DNA from: Pocillopora damicornis
Taxonomy: Eukaryota
NCBI RefSeq assembly: GCF_003704095.1
Contig: NW_020847757.1
Coordinates: 186,001-250,000 of the forward strand
Length of the DNA: 64,000 bases
Direction of reading: 5' to 3'
Part shown: positions 16,401 to 22,806 of the stretch, piece after piece
Position numbering within the stretch: the first letter of the stretch is position 1
Layout of the letters: each line of letters starts with the position of its first letter
Translations under genes and position numbers: made by a program
The notes under the pieces: generated by a model
Database searches by the model: none
What the model saw: only the letters and a program-made list of their open reading frames with translations
What the model was told of the DNA's origin: nothing

Positions 16401-18000
16401 GAGAGTGTCTTAAGTTTATAAAACTGAGAATAAAGAGAACAAGACAAAACATGTAATTCAGTTTAATTAATCCAAACCTTTTCACCAGCAACAATGCATA
16501 GAGATTCTACATCAATAGCTCGTGACTCTACGTAACACCTCTCCATAAATCGGTTAAGTTCAGTGCCAAATTCCGTCATTCTATAAGAGGATGTAAGGGC
16601 ATATTCAAGGAAGATATTAAAAATTTATAATCTGTAGTACACTCCTTGTTATGTTAGTTCTGAATTGGCTTTAAAACAATTTAAACTTGTCAGTTGATAA
16701 TTGTTATTGTTATTCATCTGTCTGTGTGTTGTGTAACATGTTGATCTGTACTGAGAAATTACTTTGTTGCCATTCCTGATGGTGAAATATCTAACTTACC
16801 TTCCTGACTCAAAGGCTGGTGATGCCATTGGTGAAAGTTCCACATTGAGAAATAGCTGGCCTTCTGTGGGTCTATTTGGCTTTGGTTGAACAACTTCACA
16901 AGACACTTGAGCTAAAACCCTATCCAAGACAAATATAATGTGCCTATGTTTCATTGTTGTTTTAGACAATCAGAATTCTGAGGGCACCAATTAACCCTTT
17001 ACACCCTAACATCAGTAAGTATATTCTCCATACTGTTCACCATACATTTCCTAAGGTGCTGAGAAGGAGAATTTGTTTAACAATTAAGAGCTTTCTTAGT
17101 TGGTGATTATTTCTTTCATTCTTGTGTCAGTAATGTTTGATTCAGGGATGGTATTGTAAGGAGAAATTAGATGCTAGTCACTCTTAGGGGTCAAAGGGTT
17201 AATAAATTATTCCCAAGATACTCTGTGTATCTGCTTAGAAACAAGGGTAAAAAATTTGAGAGCCTTTGAATAATACATCTTCACAAAAGAGGTTTTGCAC
17301 TTGGCGTTGCAGTTGTTTAAAAGGCGGATAGCATTATCCACTGGAAAAATGATTATCCAGTGGATAGCCTAGTGTAATTTGCTGAGTAGCGATTTACCTA
17401 TTGGAAGGCGCTATCCTCCCCTTAAACAGTTTCGCCCAAACCCTTGGCCCTGGTCCACTTATTTAGGTATTTCCACTTTTCACTGTAATGACTAATACAT
17501 CCGTTTTAAAATCATTGGTCTTCCTTCCTTTCTGATTAGCGATTTATTAACTGATAACTATTTTACCCAGCCATTGAGATCGCGGGAACGATTCCAGACG
17601 AAATTGTATTCCACTCAGTTCCTTCCATTATCACTATCTACTAATGTGAATAATCAAAACGTTTATAACACAAGTCCAGATTGCGACCAATTTATAGAAA
17701 GGGAATGCCTCAGAACCATCCAGAATGACTTGTTGCCGTACCTTGTTTCACCCAGTTGAACCTCGCAATGTCCTCTGTCTACACCAAATAAAATTCTGAG
17801 TTTCCGGTAGTCGTAGGCTTCGCGTCCATCTATGCGCTGTTTATTAATACAAAAAGACTTTAGCAGTCTATTCCAATCAACAATAAAGGGAAAATAAAAG
17901 CAAAAGTAGGTAATCTGGTGTTGTAAACCTTTCTCGATTTGATTCCCTCGAGGAGAAAATCTCTTTCGCACGTAGAAAATGGCACGCTGGATGCTTTCAT
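10427..18000 (-). CDS. EXOSC9: Exosome complex component RRP45 / PM-Scl75
   Basis: Exons 18000-17929, 17836-17742, 16919-16800, 16580-16478, 16196-16099, 15618-15579, 15154-15072, 14665-14533, 13956-13868, 13304-13199, 12912-12875, 12192-12171, 11524-11362, 10732-10645 and 10559-10427. The two micro-exons and the 13199 donor are less certain. Motifs: RIDGR, VQLGETRVLAQVSCEVV, IDVESLCIVAGEKVWSIRVDVHVLDNGGN, RRPDVSV, DPVPLSILHMP, PGTAQIGEG, acidic SIM-like DSEEEDVIIL and a basic C-terminal NLS. Confidence 0.93.
10845..11245 (+). repeat. Degenerate ~30-bp minisatellite in EXOSC9 intron
   Basis: About 11-12 units resembling TTGCATATTTTCCCGCGCTTGGCACC. Confidence 0.75.
13623..13796 (+). mobile_element. 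TTAA MITE, family B (internally deleted)
   Basis: ttaaccctttacatcctaacatcag...cactcttagacgtcaaagggtta; homologous to 16991-17202. Confidence 0.8.
16991..17202 (+). mobile_element. TTAA MITE, family B
   Basis: TTAA-CCCTTT...AAAGGG-TTAA termini, 212 bp. Confidence 0.88.
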
Positions 18001-18299
18001 GGTGTTCAAGGTTGTTTTCAGTCAGGCGTTCCTAGCTACAAGATGAAGCTAATCTTATACCTGGCTCTAATTTGATAGCCGCTGATTATATAAACTGCGG
18101 GTGAAGGGTGCAAGCGATGACTTTCCGAGGACGGAGTAGAATAGATAGGAACTTCACTGTGTCTTTCTGTTGGAAATGTTACGGTGACAAAATATTAGTA
18201 ATCTTCACCCGTTTATGGCTAAAGGTGTGAAGTAATTCCTTACTCTTGAGATAATATTTGAAAAGAAAAAAGCTTGATGCGGGCAGATCTGCTTCTAAT
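18001..18299. promoter_or_regulatory. Bidirectional promoter EXOSC9/PRORP-1
   Basis: 299 bp separate the divergent ATGs. Segment ~18020-18100 is repeated upstream of PRORP-2. Confidence 0.6.
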
Positions 18300-19673
18300 A
18301 TGCGACTGAGGTACATTACACCGTTATGGAGAGGTGGTTACGTAAGCACGTGTTCGTTTCAAAGAACGTTTCTGTCTTCAGAGGCTCCACATTACGGTAA
18401 GACCCTTGAAAACGGCCAAAATTTGGATTCCGAAACGAAGGAAAATGGCAACGGAGATATTATAGGAGCTGTGAAGTTATTTGAAGCCATCAAACATTAC
18501 ACTAAATCCAGTAATATACAAAACAAGACTAAATTGCTGAAATCTTACTGCGACTGGGGACTTTACGAACAAGCCATGAAAATTGTGCGTTCCATCGTCA
18601 ATCTTAAGGTTTACGACACAGATGCTTATGACTTGGTAATAACCAGTATGGCAACGCGTAGACAGATAGGAAAAGCCATACAGGTCTTCGAGGAGAAATT
18701 GAAGAGGCAACAACACTTTCCAACCAAAGTATACTTAAGTGAATACGTCACGGAAATGATTGAACTGCTCCTCAATCCTGAAAATCTGATAATTAAGGGA
18801 GAGGTTTTTGATGAACATCGTCATACTAGAACATCACAGATAGTGTTTCGTTATCTTGAACAAAATGGGGAAAGATTACCATTAAGATTAATTCGTGCAA
18901 TTCACTCGTGGCTCATGCATGATCCAAATAACTACTGGACTTGGCAGAACTGCACAATTAGTGAAGCAGGAAAATGCTCTTTCTGTGGTAATATGTTGAT
19001 AAACCGCTTACCCTTAGAGGATGTACGCCAGTTGAAATTTGAAATCCTAAGGCTTTTTGAAATTCCACAGAAGTCTACTTTTAAACTGAACGATATAAGT
19101 TTAGAAGACCAGATGTACCAAGAGATACAAGAATTGAAGATGTTTGTCAAAGAAAAGGGGCCATTTGACGTAATTATTGATGGCTTGAATGTCCTTTGCA
19201 CAGAATCAAAATTTAAGTTATCATCACACAGGCTATTAGAAATGGTAAATCACTTTGCCATACAACAGAAGAATGTTATGGTTGTATTATCTAAGAAAGA
19301 ACTGGAAAATAGGAAAGCCACTAGGGCTCTCAAAACTACTAATTGTGCTGTTTTCATGAGCAGCTTTGGAAATGATGATTTGTACCTTTTGTATGCTGCA
19401 GCCATGAGTGGATTGCGATATGTTGAGGTTGTCACCAATGACAAACTCCGAGATCACCGCCTTTTATTCCCAGCTGAAGTGGGATGGATATTCTCAAGAT
19501 GGACACGGTTAAACCGTGTAAGCTTTACAAAAGGAGGAAAAGGAAAACTGCAATTTTTCAGAGACAGAGTTGACCCTGTTGTGCAGTACAATGGGAATTC
19601 ATGGCACTTTCCTGTTGCTAATGAAGCATGGAGGTGTTCAAGGAGATCAAAACGGTTCAAAAATTTATTTTAA
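18300..19673 (+). CDS. PRORP: Protein-only RNase P catalytic subunit (PRORP/MRPP3-like), paralogue 1; intronless
   Basis: Single ORF; the first ATG is at 18300 (the ORF track starts at an upstream TTG). It has an Arg-rich presequence-like N-terminus, PPR-like helical repeats, CxxC (CSFC), the NYN nuclease motifs GPFDVIIDGLNV, NDDLYLLYAA and VVTNDKLRDH, and the C-terminal Zn ligands SWHFP...WRC. Confidence 0.9.
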   Translation: MRLRYITPLWRGGYVSTCSFQRTFLSSEAPHYGKTLENGQNLDSETKENGNGDIIGAVKLFEAIKHYTKSSNIQNKTKLLKSYCDWGLYEQAMKIVRSIVNLKVYDTDAYDLVITSMATRRQIGKAIQVFEEKLKRQQHFPTKVYLSEYVTEMIELLLNPENLIIKGEVFDEHRHTRTSQIVFRYLEQNGERLPLRLIRAIHSWLMHDPNNYWTWQNCTISEAGKCSFCGNMLINRLPLEDVRQLKFEILRLFEIPQKSTFKLNDISLEDQMYQEIQELKMFVKEKGPFDVIIDGLNVLCTESKFKLSSHRLLEMVNHFAIQQKNVMVVLSKKELENRKATRALKTTNCAVFMSSFGNDDLYLLYAAAMSGLRYVEVVTNDKLRDHRLLFPAEVGWIFSRWTRLNRVSFTKGGKGKLQFFRDRVDPVVQYNGNSWHFPVANEAWRCSRRSKRFKNLF

Positions 19674-19775
19674 ATGCACATTTTTTAAAAGCTATGTACA
19701 ATAGAGAATTTTGAAACTTGTTTATTGAGGCATAACTGAATGGCTCTTCCAGTAAACAAATATAATGGTATATTT

Positions 19776-19872
19776 GATAAATTATGTGATTCGGGTCACC
19801 CTGTGGCACTTATGTAAATGTTAAGATAAATTATGTGATTCAGGTCATCCTGTGGCACTTATGTAAATGTTA
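19776..19872 (+). repeat. 49-bp tandem duplication
   Basis: gataaattatgtgattc(g/a)ggtca(c/t)cctgtggcacttatgtaaatgtta occurs twice with 2 mismatches. Confidence 0.9.
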
Positions 19873-20869
19873 TTACTGTTGGAGGAAAAAAATTGGCTTT
19901 TTGTTAAATGATAGTTGTGAACTTCTTCTTTCCTTAAGTTATGTATTTCCGTTATGTGCCAATTAATTCAAAGTTTGAAATTCCCCCCTCTTCCTCCCTG
20001 TCTACCCATGGGCATTTTACTGTCATCTGTGCTCATGGGGCAGGGAATTTCAATCTTGCTTAGGTGGGGAGGGGAATTTGAATCAGAACTGTCAAGTTTT
20101 CCCTAGGTCTACAAGAAAGTCACAGTGGCAGATCTTACCTTTACTTTGATCAAACTGGTCTTCAAAAGTTCAAATGCCTTGTGGAATATGTGATAAAATG
20201 AAGGTTGTTTACAGGAAAATGACACATGATGGGGTGAAGCTCAAGGCAACATAAGGCAAATTTGATTGGTAGTTAATGCCAAAGCATGGGAGTTGTGTGG
20301 AAATTTACTAACAATAGCATTTAGTTTCATGTGAGATTTTTTAGTGGGTTGAGATGATATTGAAAATTTAGGCAGTTTACTGGGAAATGTCATTTTATCA
20401 GGGAAAACCTAATTGGTAGTGATAAGGAAACACAGAACTGTTCTAGGAAAGTACCATTAAACACAATATGTAATTCATGGAGAACTTCTAAAAGCAAAGA
20501 AACAAATATTTACATGGCAGAGGGAATCAGTTTCGGCTGGCTACACGCTTATTTCCCGCGCAAAATTTTAAAGGAACAAATTAAGAAACAGCGTTAATTG
20601 ACCGCTCTCTCGCAAAGTGAGCGTCGTGTTTAATTCAGACAGGCGTTCCTAGAGCGGAACTAAAACTCGAGCATCAACTGGCACTAATTTGGTAGGCGCT
20701 GATTAGATGACTGCAGTTTCATGATGATTTAGGGGCACAGGGACCAGAGAGCGGGGAAGGATAGAAATAATTCAGTCCGGGTCTTTGTTATCTTCTCAAC
20801 TGTTGTATGACTTTTGTTTTTGGAAACAGTTTAGGAACATTCAGCTGCTTTATCCAACGGGAACCCGGT

Positions 20870-22384
20870 ATGATTCGGCTGAGGTGTCGTACATCGAGAA
20901 AGAGAGCTTGTGTAGCAAGCACGTGTCTGCTTTTCAGATCCTTTCTATGTTCAAAAGCTTCAACTTCTGTTCATACCCATGGAAACGGCCAAAATGTAGA
21001 GACTGAAACGACGATGAAACACTACATTAAGACTGGTAAGGTAACGGATGCCGTAAGGCTATTTGAAGAGAGCAGGAACGGTGGAAAGTCGTGGAAAATA
21101 GACGGTTGTTACTCTTGGCTATTACATTTGTTTGTGCAACACAATGAACATGAAGCTGTAGACAAGCTGTACGAAGACATTAAACGAAATGCTATTTTCA
21201 TTGGCGAAGGAGCTAAATTCTCGATGATTAAATCTTACAGCAATCGGGGACTTTTTGACCTGGCTGTCGGCATGCTGCACGCCATTGTGGAAAGAAATAT
21301 AGCTCACCACACTCGTCATTATGATTATATCATTACCTCTATGGCCAAGAGGGGACAATCGAGAAGAGCTTTGCGGGTCTTTGAGGAGAAACTAGAAAGG
21401 TTGGAAAATTTCGGAATTAATGAAAACATGTCTGCGCCAATCAAAGACATGATTGAATTGCTTCTTAACCCTAAAAGTCTCCCAGTTAAAGAGAACGATC
21501 ATGGTAAGGAAGGCAAAGTTGATACAAACCATCACAAGAAAATGTCAAATATGGTTTTTAGTTATCTTCAACAAACTGGTGAAAGGTTACCGGTTAAATT
21601 GCTTGTAGCAGTTCGCTCTTGGCTGAATCACGACCCTGTTTATCACTGGAAGTGGAAATACAGCAGAATAAGCGAAGTAGGAACATGCTCATCTTGTGGA
21701 AATCAATTGATGAGTGGCATCCTCCCAGGAGATATACAACAATTGGAAAGGGAGCTAATCAAACTGTCCAACAGCCCTCAACTGGTTATTTCCAAAGTGG
21801 CAGGTGAAAATCTGGACAAGAAAATACAGAAAGAGTTGGAAGAATTGAAGAGCTTTATTCAAAGAAGAGGACCATTTGATGTGGTAATTGATGGCATGAA
21901 TGTTGCTGCCTATGGCTCAGGAGCAAATATGTCATTTTCCACAGACAGGCTGGTAGCCACGGCACATCACTTTGCGGCGCAACAAAAGAAAGTGCTTGTG
22001 ATAGTAAACAAAGTTTGGAGAACTTCTGTCTACAAGCTTGAAGATGTTTGTGCTGTTTTCAGGAACAAGTTTAAAAATGATGACTTGTATGTTTTGTATG
22101 CTGCAGCTTTCAGTGGAATGCAACAAGTTGAGGTTGTCACCAACGACAGACTCAGAGATCATCGCCTTCTGCTTCCTAGCAATGTTTGGTGGACATATTT
22201 AAGATGGACAAGACTAAACTGTGTATCCTTCACAGTCAATGAAAGAGGGAAACTGGAATTTTTCAGGCAAAAAGTTGATCCAGTGGTGCAGCGTAGTGGC
22301 AGCTCCTGGCACTTCCCTGTTGAGGATCGATCATGGAGATGTGCGACAAAATCAGGAATTAAGAGATCACAAATCAAAAATTAG
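20870..22384 (+). CDS. PRORP: Protein-only RNase P catalytic subunit (PRORP/MRPP3-like), paralogue 2; intronless
   Basis: Single ORF. ATG 20870 (MIRLRC) aligns with the paralogue 1 start (MRLRY); an upstream in-frame ATG lies at 20807. It has about 4 PPR-like repeats, CSSC, GPFDVVIDGMNV, NDDLYVLYAA, VVTNDRLRDH and SWHFP...WRC. Confidence 0.92.
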   Translation: MIRLRCRTSRKRACVASTCLLFRSFLCSKASTSVHTHGNGQNVETETTMKHYIKTGKVTDAVRLFEESRNGGKSWKIDGCYSWLLHLFVQHNEHEAVDKLYEDIKRNAIFIGEGAKFSMIKSYSNRGLFDLAVGMLHAIVERNIAHHTRHYDYIITSMAKRGQSRRALRVFEEKLERLENFGINENMSAPIKDMIELLLNPKSLPVKENDHGKEGKVDTNHHKKMSNMVFSYLQQTGERLPVKLLVAVRSWLNHDPVYHWKWKYSRISEVGTCSSCGNQLMSGILPGDIQQLERELIKLSNSPQLVISKVAGENLDKKIQKELEELKSFIQRRGPFDVVIDGMNVAAYGSGANMSFSTDRLVATAHHFAAQQKKVLVIVNKVWRTSVYKLEDVCAVFRNKFKNDDLYVLYAAAFSGMQQVEVVTNDRLRDHRLLLPSNVWWTYLRWTRLNCVSFTVNERGKLEFFRQKVDPVVQRSGSSWHFPVEDRSWRCATKSGIKRSQIKN

Positions 22385-22590
22385 CCTACAATAAATACAT
22401 CCTCATCGACAACAAATAAAGATAACTTCAAAGGTGTAACATCGAGACAGGGTTGACTGACTTTGCGATACAAATGTAAAGTGCATGTATTTGAGACTTG
22501 TATGCCAAGCTTGAGTTCAAACTGGGTAGGATTAATTTGAATTAGTCAAAGAAAGGCCAAAATTCACATGTGATGTGTCCCTTGCATGTC

Positions 22591-22806
22591 TTAACCCTTT
22601 AACTCCCAAGATCTCATTGGTATTTCTCCTTACTGTCTACCATACAGTTCTTGTGATCTTAGTTTGGAGAATTTGGTATTGGATCAACTAATAGGTAATC
22701 CCCTAATTGATATTTTTCCTTTTTCTTGTCACTTTTCTGCCTTATATTGTCTTGATATTGTAAGGAGAAATTCTGTCTTGGTCACTCATGGGATGTAAAG
22801 GGTTAA
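22591..22806 (+). mobile_element. TTAA MITE, family A
   Basis: TTAA-CCCTTTAACTCCCA...TGGGATGTAAAGGG-TTAA. Confidence 0.88.

Follow-up and report, generated by a model that had tools for sequence, protein, structure and literature searches.

We analysed a 64,000-nucleotide window of the Pocillopora damicornis genome (C4392:186001-250000 of the assembly; positions below are those of the window unless a contig is named), in which two neighbouring genes encode protein-only RNase P (PRORP), the enzyme known in humans and other bilaterians as MRPP3. Both genes belong to what we call clade A, one of two anthozoan PRORP lineages, and we refer to them as copy 1 and copy 2. The genes and the extent of their transcripts are:

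18300..19673, plus strand: PRORP copy 1, the upstream, fast-evolving clade A paralogue, 457 amino acids (aa) from the first ATG
20807..22384, plus strand: PRORP copy 2, the downstream, conserved clade A paralogue, 525 aa from the first ATG
18132..19805, plus strand: transcript extent of copy 1, from unspliced polyA RNA-seq contigs (one contig reaches 19897)
20739..22617, plus strand: transcript extent of copy 2, from unspliced polyA RNA-seq contigs

Each copy is a single exon on the same strand, and the two open reading frames (ORFs) are separated by 1,133 nt. The mechanical ORF of copy 1 (18258-19673, plus strand) gives 471 aa from a TTG at 18258, its first ATG being at 18300; for copy 2, the ATG at 20870 (504 aa) is the start conserved in Stylophora, Oculina and a further coral assembly, species X. 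Both ORFs match the Pfam PRORP family (PF16953) far above the cut-off of 39.1 bits (99.1 and 94.0 bits), and their products are 41% identical (E 1e-128). The best solved relative of both is human MRPP3/PRORP (88.6 and 86.9 bits). In an alignment of 55 PRORP sequences (both window copies and 53 others), the aspartates of the NYN motifs DG-N, DD and TND are present in the two copies and invariant or near-invariant throughout; the four catalytic residues are D399, D474, D475 and D493 in AtPRORP1, and D409, D478, D479 and D499 in the human enzyme. The split zinc site is likewise found in both copies, as C-S-x-C-G before the NYN domain followed by W-H-F-P and W-R-C, with ligands (C226, C229, H436 and C446 in copy 1 numbering) that are kept family-wide. 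A sequence-only reading of this stretch had described two diverged, same-strand, single-exon PRORP ORFs with intact NYN aspartates and zinc ligands, and the ORFs, the Pfam matches, the 41% identity and the 55-row alignment confirm that description.

The two proteins differ most clearly in their RNA-recognition arm. Solved PRORPs carry an N-terminal PPR domain of about five repeats. Copy 2 scores above the cut-off with two PPR profiles (PPR_2, 38.1 bits; PPR, 36.6 bits), whereas copy 1 reaches only 17 bits, below the cut-off of 25, and has a reduced arm from which one repeat is deleted. Compared to copy 2 it is without 36 residues, corresponding to this repeat, at a gap near nt 18525, and the same deletion is present in the Stylophora protein XP_022807593. 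AlphaFold2 models (predicted local distance difference test 83.8 and predicted template-modelling score 0.81 for copy 1; 85.5 on the former measure for copy 2) show five helices before the central domain in copy 1 vs eight in copy 2, after a disordered N-terminal segment of 51 and 39 residues, respectively. A fold search with the copy 1 model returned solely PRORP structures at E < 1e-13 (7onu_E, 4xgl, 4g23, 5ft9), the best match in the PDB being the PRORP of human mitochondrial RNase P (7onu_E, E 1.9e-20).

Both copies are transcribed. The RNA data were polyA RNA-seq assemblies from two independent studies (four runs), used as contigs. Unspliced contigs are colinear with each ORF, and no splice joint was found inside either of them. 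In three of the four runs the contigs of copy 2 are separate from those of copy 1, and the intergenic stretch 19900-20740, which acts as a silent control, is nearly uncovered. RNA-seq had been proposed as a check on the pair, and in both studies each copy was recovered as its own unspliced contig.

We then placed the duplication in time. Gene order at the locus is shared by the window, Stylophora, Oculina and species X. Oculina has one PRORP at this place, between an RNase_PH-domain gene and a cyclophilin-TPR gene, and Stylophora has two, which are one-to-one orthologues of the window copies: copy 1 is 65% identical to XP_022807593, and copy 2 is 83% identical to XP_022807595. Our careful tree comprised 40 proteins, chosen from a 98-row FastTree overview and analysed under a site-heterogeneous posterior mean site frequency (PMSF) model; of its rows labelled 'Pro_', Pigoraptor, Amoebidium and Pythium carry a name. 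In it the clade of copy 1 is sister to that of copy 2 (96/89), species X is the next branch out and Oculina the one after it, and a four-point check on synonymous distances (dS) also pairs copy 1 with copy 2. Judged from gene order and tree together, the tandem duplication took place in a shared ancestor of Pocillopora and Stylophora that had already separated from Oculina. The phylogeny and copy count that had been suggested as a check thus date the pair to this lineage and clade A to an older time. A cnidarian-wide duplication was rejected on account of the single copy at the Oculina locus and of the tree.

Species X (ENA ERZ25067556) has a tandem PRORP pair of its own (L009 10001-11515 and 16992-18380). 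We rejected it as a product of the same duplication, because its two copies differ by a dS of 0.08 and group together. The ratio of nonsynonymous to synonymous divergence (dN/dS, omega) between them is about 1 (1.04), as for a neutral second copy of very recent origin. In both species X copies the RDH motif has Tyr where His is expected, and in the second it lacks the Asp as well (RAY). Immediately downstream is a retrotransposon integrase. The PRORP locus has therefore duplicated more than once in corals, and a tandem duplication alone is ordinary gene-family turnover.

The copies of the pocilloporid pair have diverged unequally. Between Pocillopora and Stylophora, copy 1 shows a dN of 0.208 and a dS of 0.377 (omega 0.55; bootstrap confidence interval (CI) 0.42-0.73), and copy 2 a dN of 0.091 and a dS of 0.351 (omega 0.26; CI 0.19-0.35). 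The difference in omega between the copies is significant and neither interval reaches 1, so the dN/dS check that had been proposed places both copies under purifying selection. The stem branch of copy 1 is four times that of copy 2 (0.60 vs 0.14). We also counted changes at 106 positions that do not vary among 21 other scleractinian clade A proteins: copy 1 differs there in both genera at 27 positions, copy 2 at 7. The copy 1 changes cluster in the PPR domain, where G-x-G has become N/D-x-Q and the conserved H-x-R has become D/E-x-D (H147D/E, R149D), a reversal of charge in a motif that is otherwise kept even in sea anemones and in the octocoral-type sequence. PPR motifs 2-3 bind the tRNA elbow (review PMC10941002). 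Because the changes of copy 1 cluster in the PPR domain, a split of substrates between the two copies is possible.

These observations can also be accounted for by a redundant duplicate, i.e. a copy 1 that drifts with its constraint relaxed, contributes nothing by itself and has stayed intact through slow decay or dosage. In favour of this are an omega double that of copy 2, the missing PPR repeat, the changes at 27 sites that are invariant elsewhere, the three ATGs in the leader, and a locus that duplicates readily, with a neutral second copy in species X (omega 1.04). Yet none of 2000 bootstrap resamples of the copy 1 omega reaches 1 (CI 0.42-0.73), two genera at a dS of about 0.37 have both retained an intact ORF with all of its catalytic and zinc residues, and the gene is transcribed. 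Neither copy has a stop codon in either genus. Within Pocillopora the protein is 99% conserved: copy 1 proteins from other Pocillopora samples are 99.2-99.4% identical to that of the window, and the three RNA-level variants listed in copy 1 are all synonymous. Going by these substitution patterns, copy 1 is constrained and not decaying, and we consider a redundant duplicate unlikely. As a separate observation, RNA contigs differ from the window in copy 2 at ten listed positions (20904-21366), seven of them non-synonymous, in the presequence and the PPR region; in this small sample they are probably differences between species within Pocillopora.

The window copies are not the only PRORPs of this coral. 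A Pfam scan of the whole assembly (234.35 Mb, 4,393 contigs) revealed one further gene, outside the window and absent from the sequence-only reading:

C4204, about 479507-484313, plus strand: third PRORP gene, six exons, each open

It was read exon by exon, with the exons unjoined, and its Stylophora orthologue (P0209) served as its proxy in trees and alignments. The exons are 70-90% identical to Stylophora XP_022798076. The motifs CxxC, DG-N, DD, WH and the final Cys are present, and TND and RDH are replaced by SSD and SNH. The genome thus holds two clade A genes and one of a second lineage, clade B, with no further clade A copy in the assembly. Orthologues of the third gene are Stylophora XP_022798076 and Nematostella XP_048577081, and Nematostella also has two PRORP genes (XP_001641723 and XP_048577081).

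In the tree, clade A (100/99) unites Nematostella A7RFT7, Actinia, all scleractinian matches and a basal group related to the octocoral Dendronephthya, and so spans sea anemones, stony corals and octocorals. One basal protein (P0032) is 60% identical to a Dendronephthya protein in a homology search; a protein-cluster search with it returned generic PRORP clusters only, and no taxon. Clade B (95/90) comprises the Stylophora third gene, Nematostella XP_048577081 and Hydractinia, and joins Bilateria at 98/88. Gene structure follows the same division. No introns interrupt the clade A genes of Nematostella, Oculina, Stylophora, species X and the window. Clade B genes have several exons and, in Stylophora and Nematostella, a conserved zf-U11-48K/dsrm neighbour; each of the five introns of the Stylophora gene matches an intron of amphioxus MRPP3 in position, to within one residue. 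On phylogeny and intron positions, the third gene appears to correspond in structure to bilaterian MRPP3. Clade A, in turn, looks like an ancient processed copy (retrogene) at least as old as Anthozoa, because it is intronless beside an intron-bearing clade B with ancestral intron positions. A poly(A) remnant and target-site duplications would have been erased, since the event would predate the hexacoral-octocoral split. The sequence-only reading had taken the pair as the coral's MRPP3. This does not hold: the gene on C4204 rules out the pair as the only MRPP3 of the coral, and the gene that goes with bilaterian MRPP3, in the tree and by intron positions, is this intron-bearing one.

We next considered the mitochondrial setting. 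The mitochondrial DNA (mtDNA) is present in the assembly as a contig of 17,415 bp (C4393), with two tRNA matches and nothing else tRNA-like, in agreement with the earlier statement that the host mtDNA is poor in tRNAs. ARAGORN finds tRNA-Met only, and the second tRNA comes from the Rfam model alone (30.3 bits). The tRNA-Met lies at the start of the contig, directly before the large rRNA, and the second, weak match is at L018:5902-5971; COX1 in this contig has 10 in-frame TGA codons (code 4). The nuclear genome retains a canonical RNase P RNA gene (151.9 bits). All three PRORPs begin with basic, acid-poor segments, homologous between copy 1 and copy 2, and all three look mitochondrial on this ground.

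Human PRORP needs TRMT10C-SDR5C1; plant PRORPs work as single proteins, and their substrates include tRNA-like structures at the ends of mRNAs (PMC10941002). In the coral assembly the TRM10 family is represented by one single-ORF gene (C2915:350875-351822, minus strand), which scores 216 bits against human TRMT10A vs 60 bits against TRMT10C. A Pfam TRM10 scan and a paralogue search found no TRMT10C (MRPP1), no TRMT10B and no second TRM10 paralogue in this incomplete draft assembly, where exon-split genes can be missed. The MRPP1 partner may thus be missing, and coral PRORPs may work without the methyltransferase subunit of bilaterians.

The sequence-only reading had linked the retention of two copies to an undescribed system that cuts the tRNA-less junctions of cnidarian mitochondrial polycistronic transcripts. 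The idea draws on the two tRNAs of the host mtDNA, on the remodelled PPR arm of copy 1, on plant PRORPs that cleave tRNA-like structures at mRNA ends (PMC10941002), and on octocoral mitochondrial mRNAs, whose units are released in the absence of tRNA punctuation by factors yet to be identified (Shimpi et al., PMC5474008). It also draws on the presence of two anthozoan PRORP lineages where MRPP3 is regarded as a single-copy marker of mitochondrial tRNA processing in animals (Pett & Lavrov 2015, PMC4558845). The tandem duplication, however, is limited to one coral family, and tRNA loss is cnidarian-wide. Oculina has one copy where Stylophora and the window have two, and therefore the duplication does not track the loss of mitochondrial tRNAs; the duplicate of species X, for its part, is neutral. 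Junction cutting fits at most the older split between clades A and B, not the tandem pair, and the substrate role is putative. The proposed link is not supported for a pair confined to Pocillopora and Stylophora, and we regard it as improbable. A division of the paralogues between compartments, with one of them nuclear or cytosolic like plant PRORP2/3, had also been proposed. It has precedents in plants and trypanosomes (PMC10941002), and the alternative upstream in-frame ATG of copy 2 (20807) would bury the presequence-like segment; we nevertheless hold it to be highly improbable, given the homologous basic, disordered N-termini kept in both copies and the canonical nuclear RNase P RNA (151.9 bits), PRORP and ribonucleoprotein (RNP) forms not being found together in one compartment (PMC10941002).

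The sequences around the pair help to define the unit that was duplicated:

18022..18088, plus strand: conserved promoter-proximal blocks before copy 1, TCAGGCGTTCC ... CTGGC-CTAATT ... TAGCCGCTGA
20640..20705, plus strand: matching promoter-proximal blocks before copy 2
17741..18014, minus strand: 5' exons of the upstream head-to-head neighbour, an RNase_PH-domain (exosome-subunit-type) gene, from RNA joints, the ORF 17663-17971 and synteny

The blocks before copy 1 sit 25-65 nt before the 5' ends of its RNA contigs. Three of them (TCAGGCGTTCC, CTGGCACTAATT and TAGCCGCTGA) are invariant in five upstream regions, namely those of copy 1 and copy 2 in Pocillopora, of copy 1 and copy 2 in Stylophora, and of the single Oculina gene, and this invariance persists across three genera despite saturated synonymous divergence. 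Given such conservation, the blocks probably act as promoter elements, which the head-to-head RNase_PH gene would share wherever it is present. The same conserved blocks stand before both copies, and therefore the duplication unit would have carried its own promoter.

The RNase_PH gene has an intron at 17837-17928 (RNA joint 17836/17929, CT..AC), the only intron-type joint near the pair, and the RNase_PH Pfam domain is also found in the neighbour gene of Stylophora and Oculina. Downstream of the pair, the neighbour is the cyclophilin-TPR gene, on the minus strand. That the neighbours are intron-rich, as had been said of them, is confirmed by collinear exon blocks, which show the flanking genes to be multi-exon. 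The 5' leader of copy 1 contains three upstream ATGs (18176, 18215 and 18277). The third opens an upstream ORF (uORF) of 10 codons that overlaps the main start of copy 1 (window 18176-18309 for the three ATGs and the uORF), and it has a counterpart in Stylophora. This leader uORF suggests possible translational control of copy 1. Directly after the end of the copy 2 transcript, at 22591-22806, we noted an element of about 216 bp resembling a miniature inverted-repeat transposable element (MITE), with 21-nt terminal inverted repeats. A first look at the genome gave more than 3,000 candidates for it (87-92% identity), its summed RNA-seq contig depth is enormous, and species X has a related copy.

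Taken together, our data probably reflect two functional mitochondrial nucleases that stem from a lineage-specific tandem duplication of PRORP, with the upstream copy reshaped in its RNA-recognition arm and kept under selection. The sequence of events is as follows. An anthozoan intronless clade A PRORP, coexisting with an intron-bearing clade B PRORP, was duplicated in tandem at the DNA level, together with its likely promoter, between the RNase_PH and cyclophilin-TPR genes. The downstream copy 2 has changed little, and the upstream copy 1 underwent a burst of change in which one PPR repeat was lost and conserved basic PPR residues became acidic, before settling under a weaker but real purifying selection. 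Both copies retain the complete two-metal NYN active site and the zinc site, and each is transcribed, in all likelihood from a promoter of its own. Their N-termini resemble presequences, through which both would be imported into mitochondria, and both would work as Mg-dependent endonucleases, cleaving RNA on the 5' side of tRNAs or of structures like them. With its PPR arm shortened and recharged, copy 1 may prefer a narrower or a different range of substrates (sub- or neofunctionalisation).

Several points weigh against this account or its older framework. The raised omega of copy 1, its PPR loss and its upstream ATGs also fit a redundant gene under relaxed constraint. On the transcript side, contigs give neither expression levels nor exact transcript ends, and in one run (X3) a contig extends into the intergenic region between the copies. 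The suggested mitochondrial targeting comes from crude N-terminal composition only. As for the two lineages, forcing clades A and B together costs 6.9 log-likelihood units, which is borderline in the approximately unbiased (AU) test (p 0.049), and clade B and Bilateria are both long branches. Clade A proteins match human MRPP3 with a higher score (87-89 bits) than clade B does (65 bits), and because of this, long-branch effects are possible in the grouping of clade B with Bilateria.

Comparison with known systems shows where the coral genes are familiar and where they depart. Like human MRPP3 (KIAA0391), which is the catalytic part of mitochondrial RNase P, and its bilaterian counterparts, the coral copies combine a PPR domain, a split zinc-binding domain and an NYN nuclease, and have the four Asp and the Cys/His zinc ligands in common with them. 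They differ in that the tandem pair is intronless and lies in clade A, in that the PPR arm of copy 1 is shorter, and in that it is the clade B gene of the coral, not the pair, that groups with bilaterian MRPP3 (98/88). With plants (PRORP1/2/3 of Arabidopsis and Physcomitrium) the coral shares the presence of several paralogues in one genome and the same overall fold (4g23, 5ft9). Similarity of the coral copies to plant PRORPs is far lower, however (39-45 bits, vs 87-89 to human). Plant paralogues are moreover distributed over compartments and stand in for the RNP enzyme, in contrast to the coral, which keeps a nuclear RNase P RNA. The closest named relatives are three proteins of Stylophora pistillata, a coral of the same family, annotated 'mitochondrial ribonuclease P protein 3-like': XP_022807593 is the orthologue of copy 1, XP_022807595 that of copy 2 and XP_022798076 that of the third gene. 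Orthologues are thus already in RefSeq under automatic names, in Stylophora and Nematostella. In the literature searched we found no paper describing multiple PRORPs in cnidarians.

A bolder reading gives anthozoans a PRORP system unlike that of bilaterians: two anciently separated mitochondrial PRORPs (A and B), possibly working without TRMT10C, one of which would have been enlisted to cut polycistronic mitochondrial transcripts at non-tRNA sites, with the remodelled PPR arm of pocilloporid copy 1 adding a third specificity. We give it a slim chance. As these sequences show, there are two or more PRORP lineages in anthozoans and three genes in pocilloporid corals, all apparently functional. 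The three-gene set, the retrogene-like clade A and a TRMT10C undetected in a draft assembly are useful, testable leads. Cnidarian mitochondrial transcripts mature with only one or two tRNAs (PMC5474008), and the three coral PRORPs are candidate enzymes for pre-tRNA-Met/Trp and for the tRNA-less junctions; copy 1 offers a natural experiment on a shortened PPR arm and PRORP specificity.

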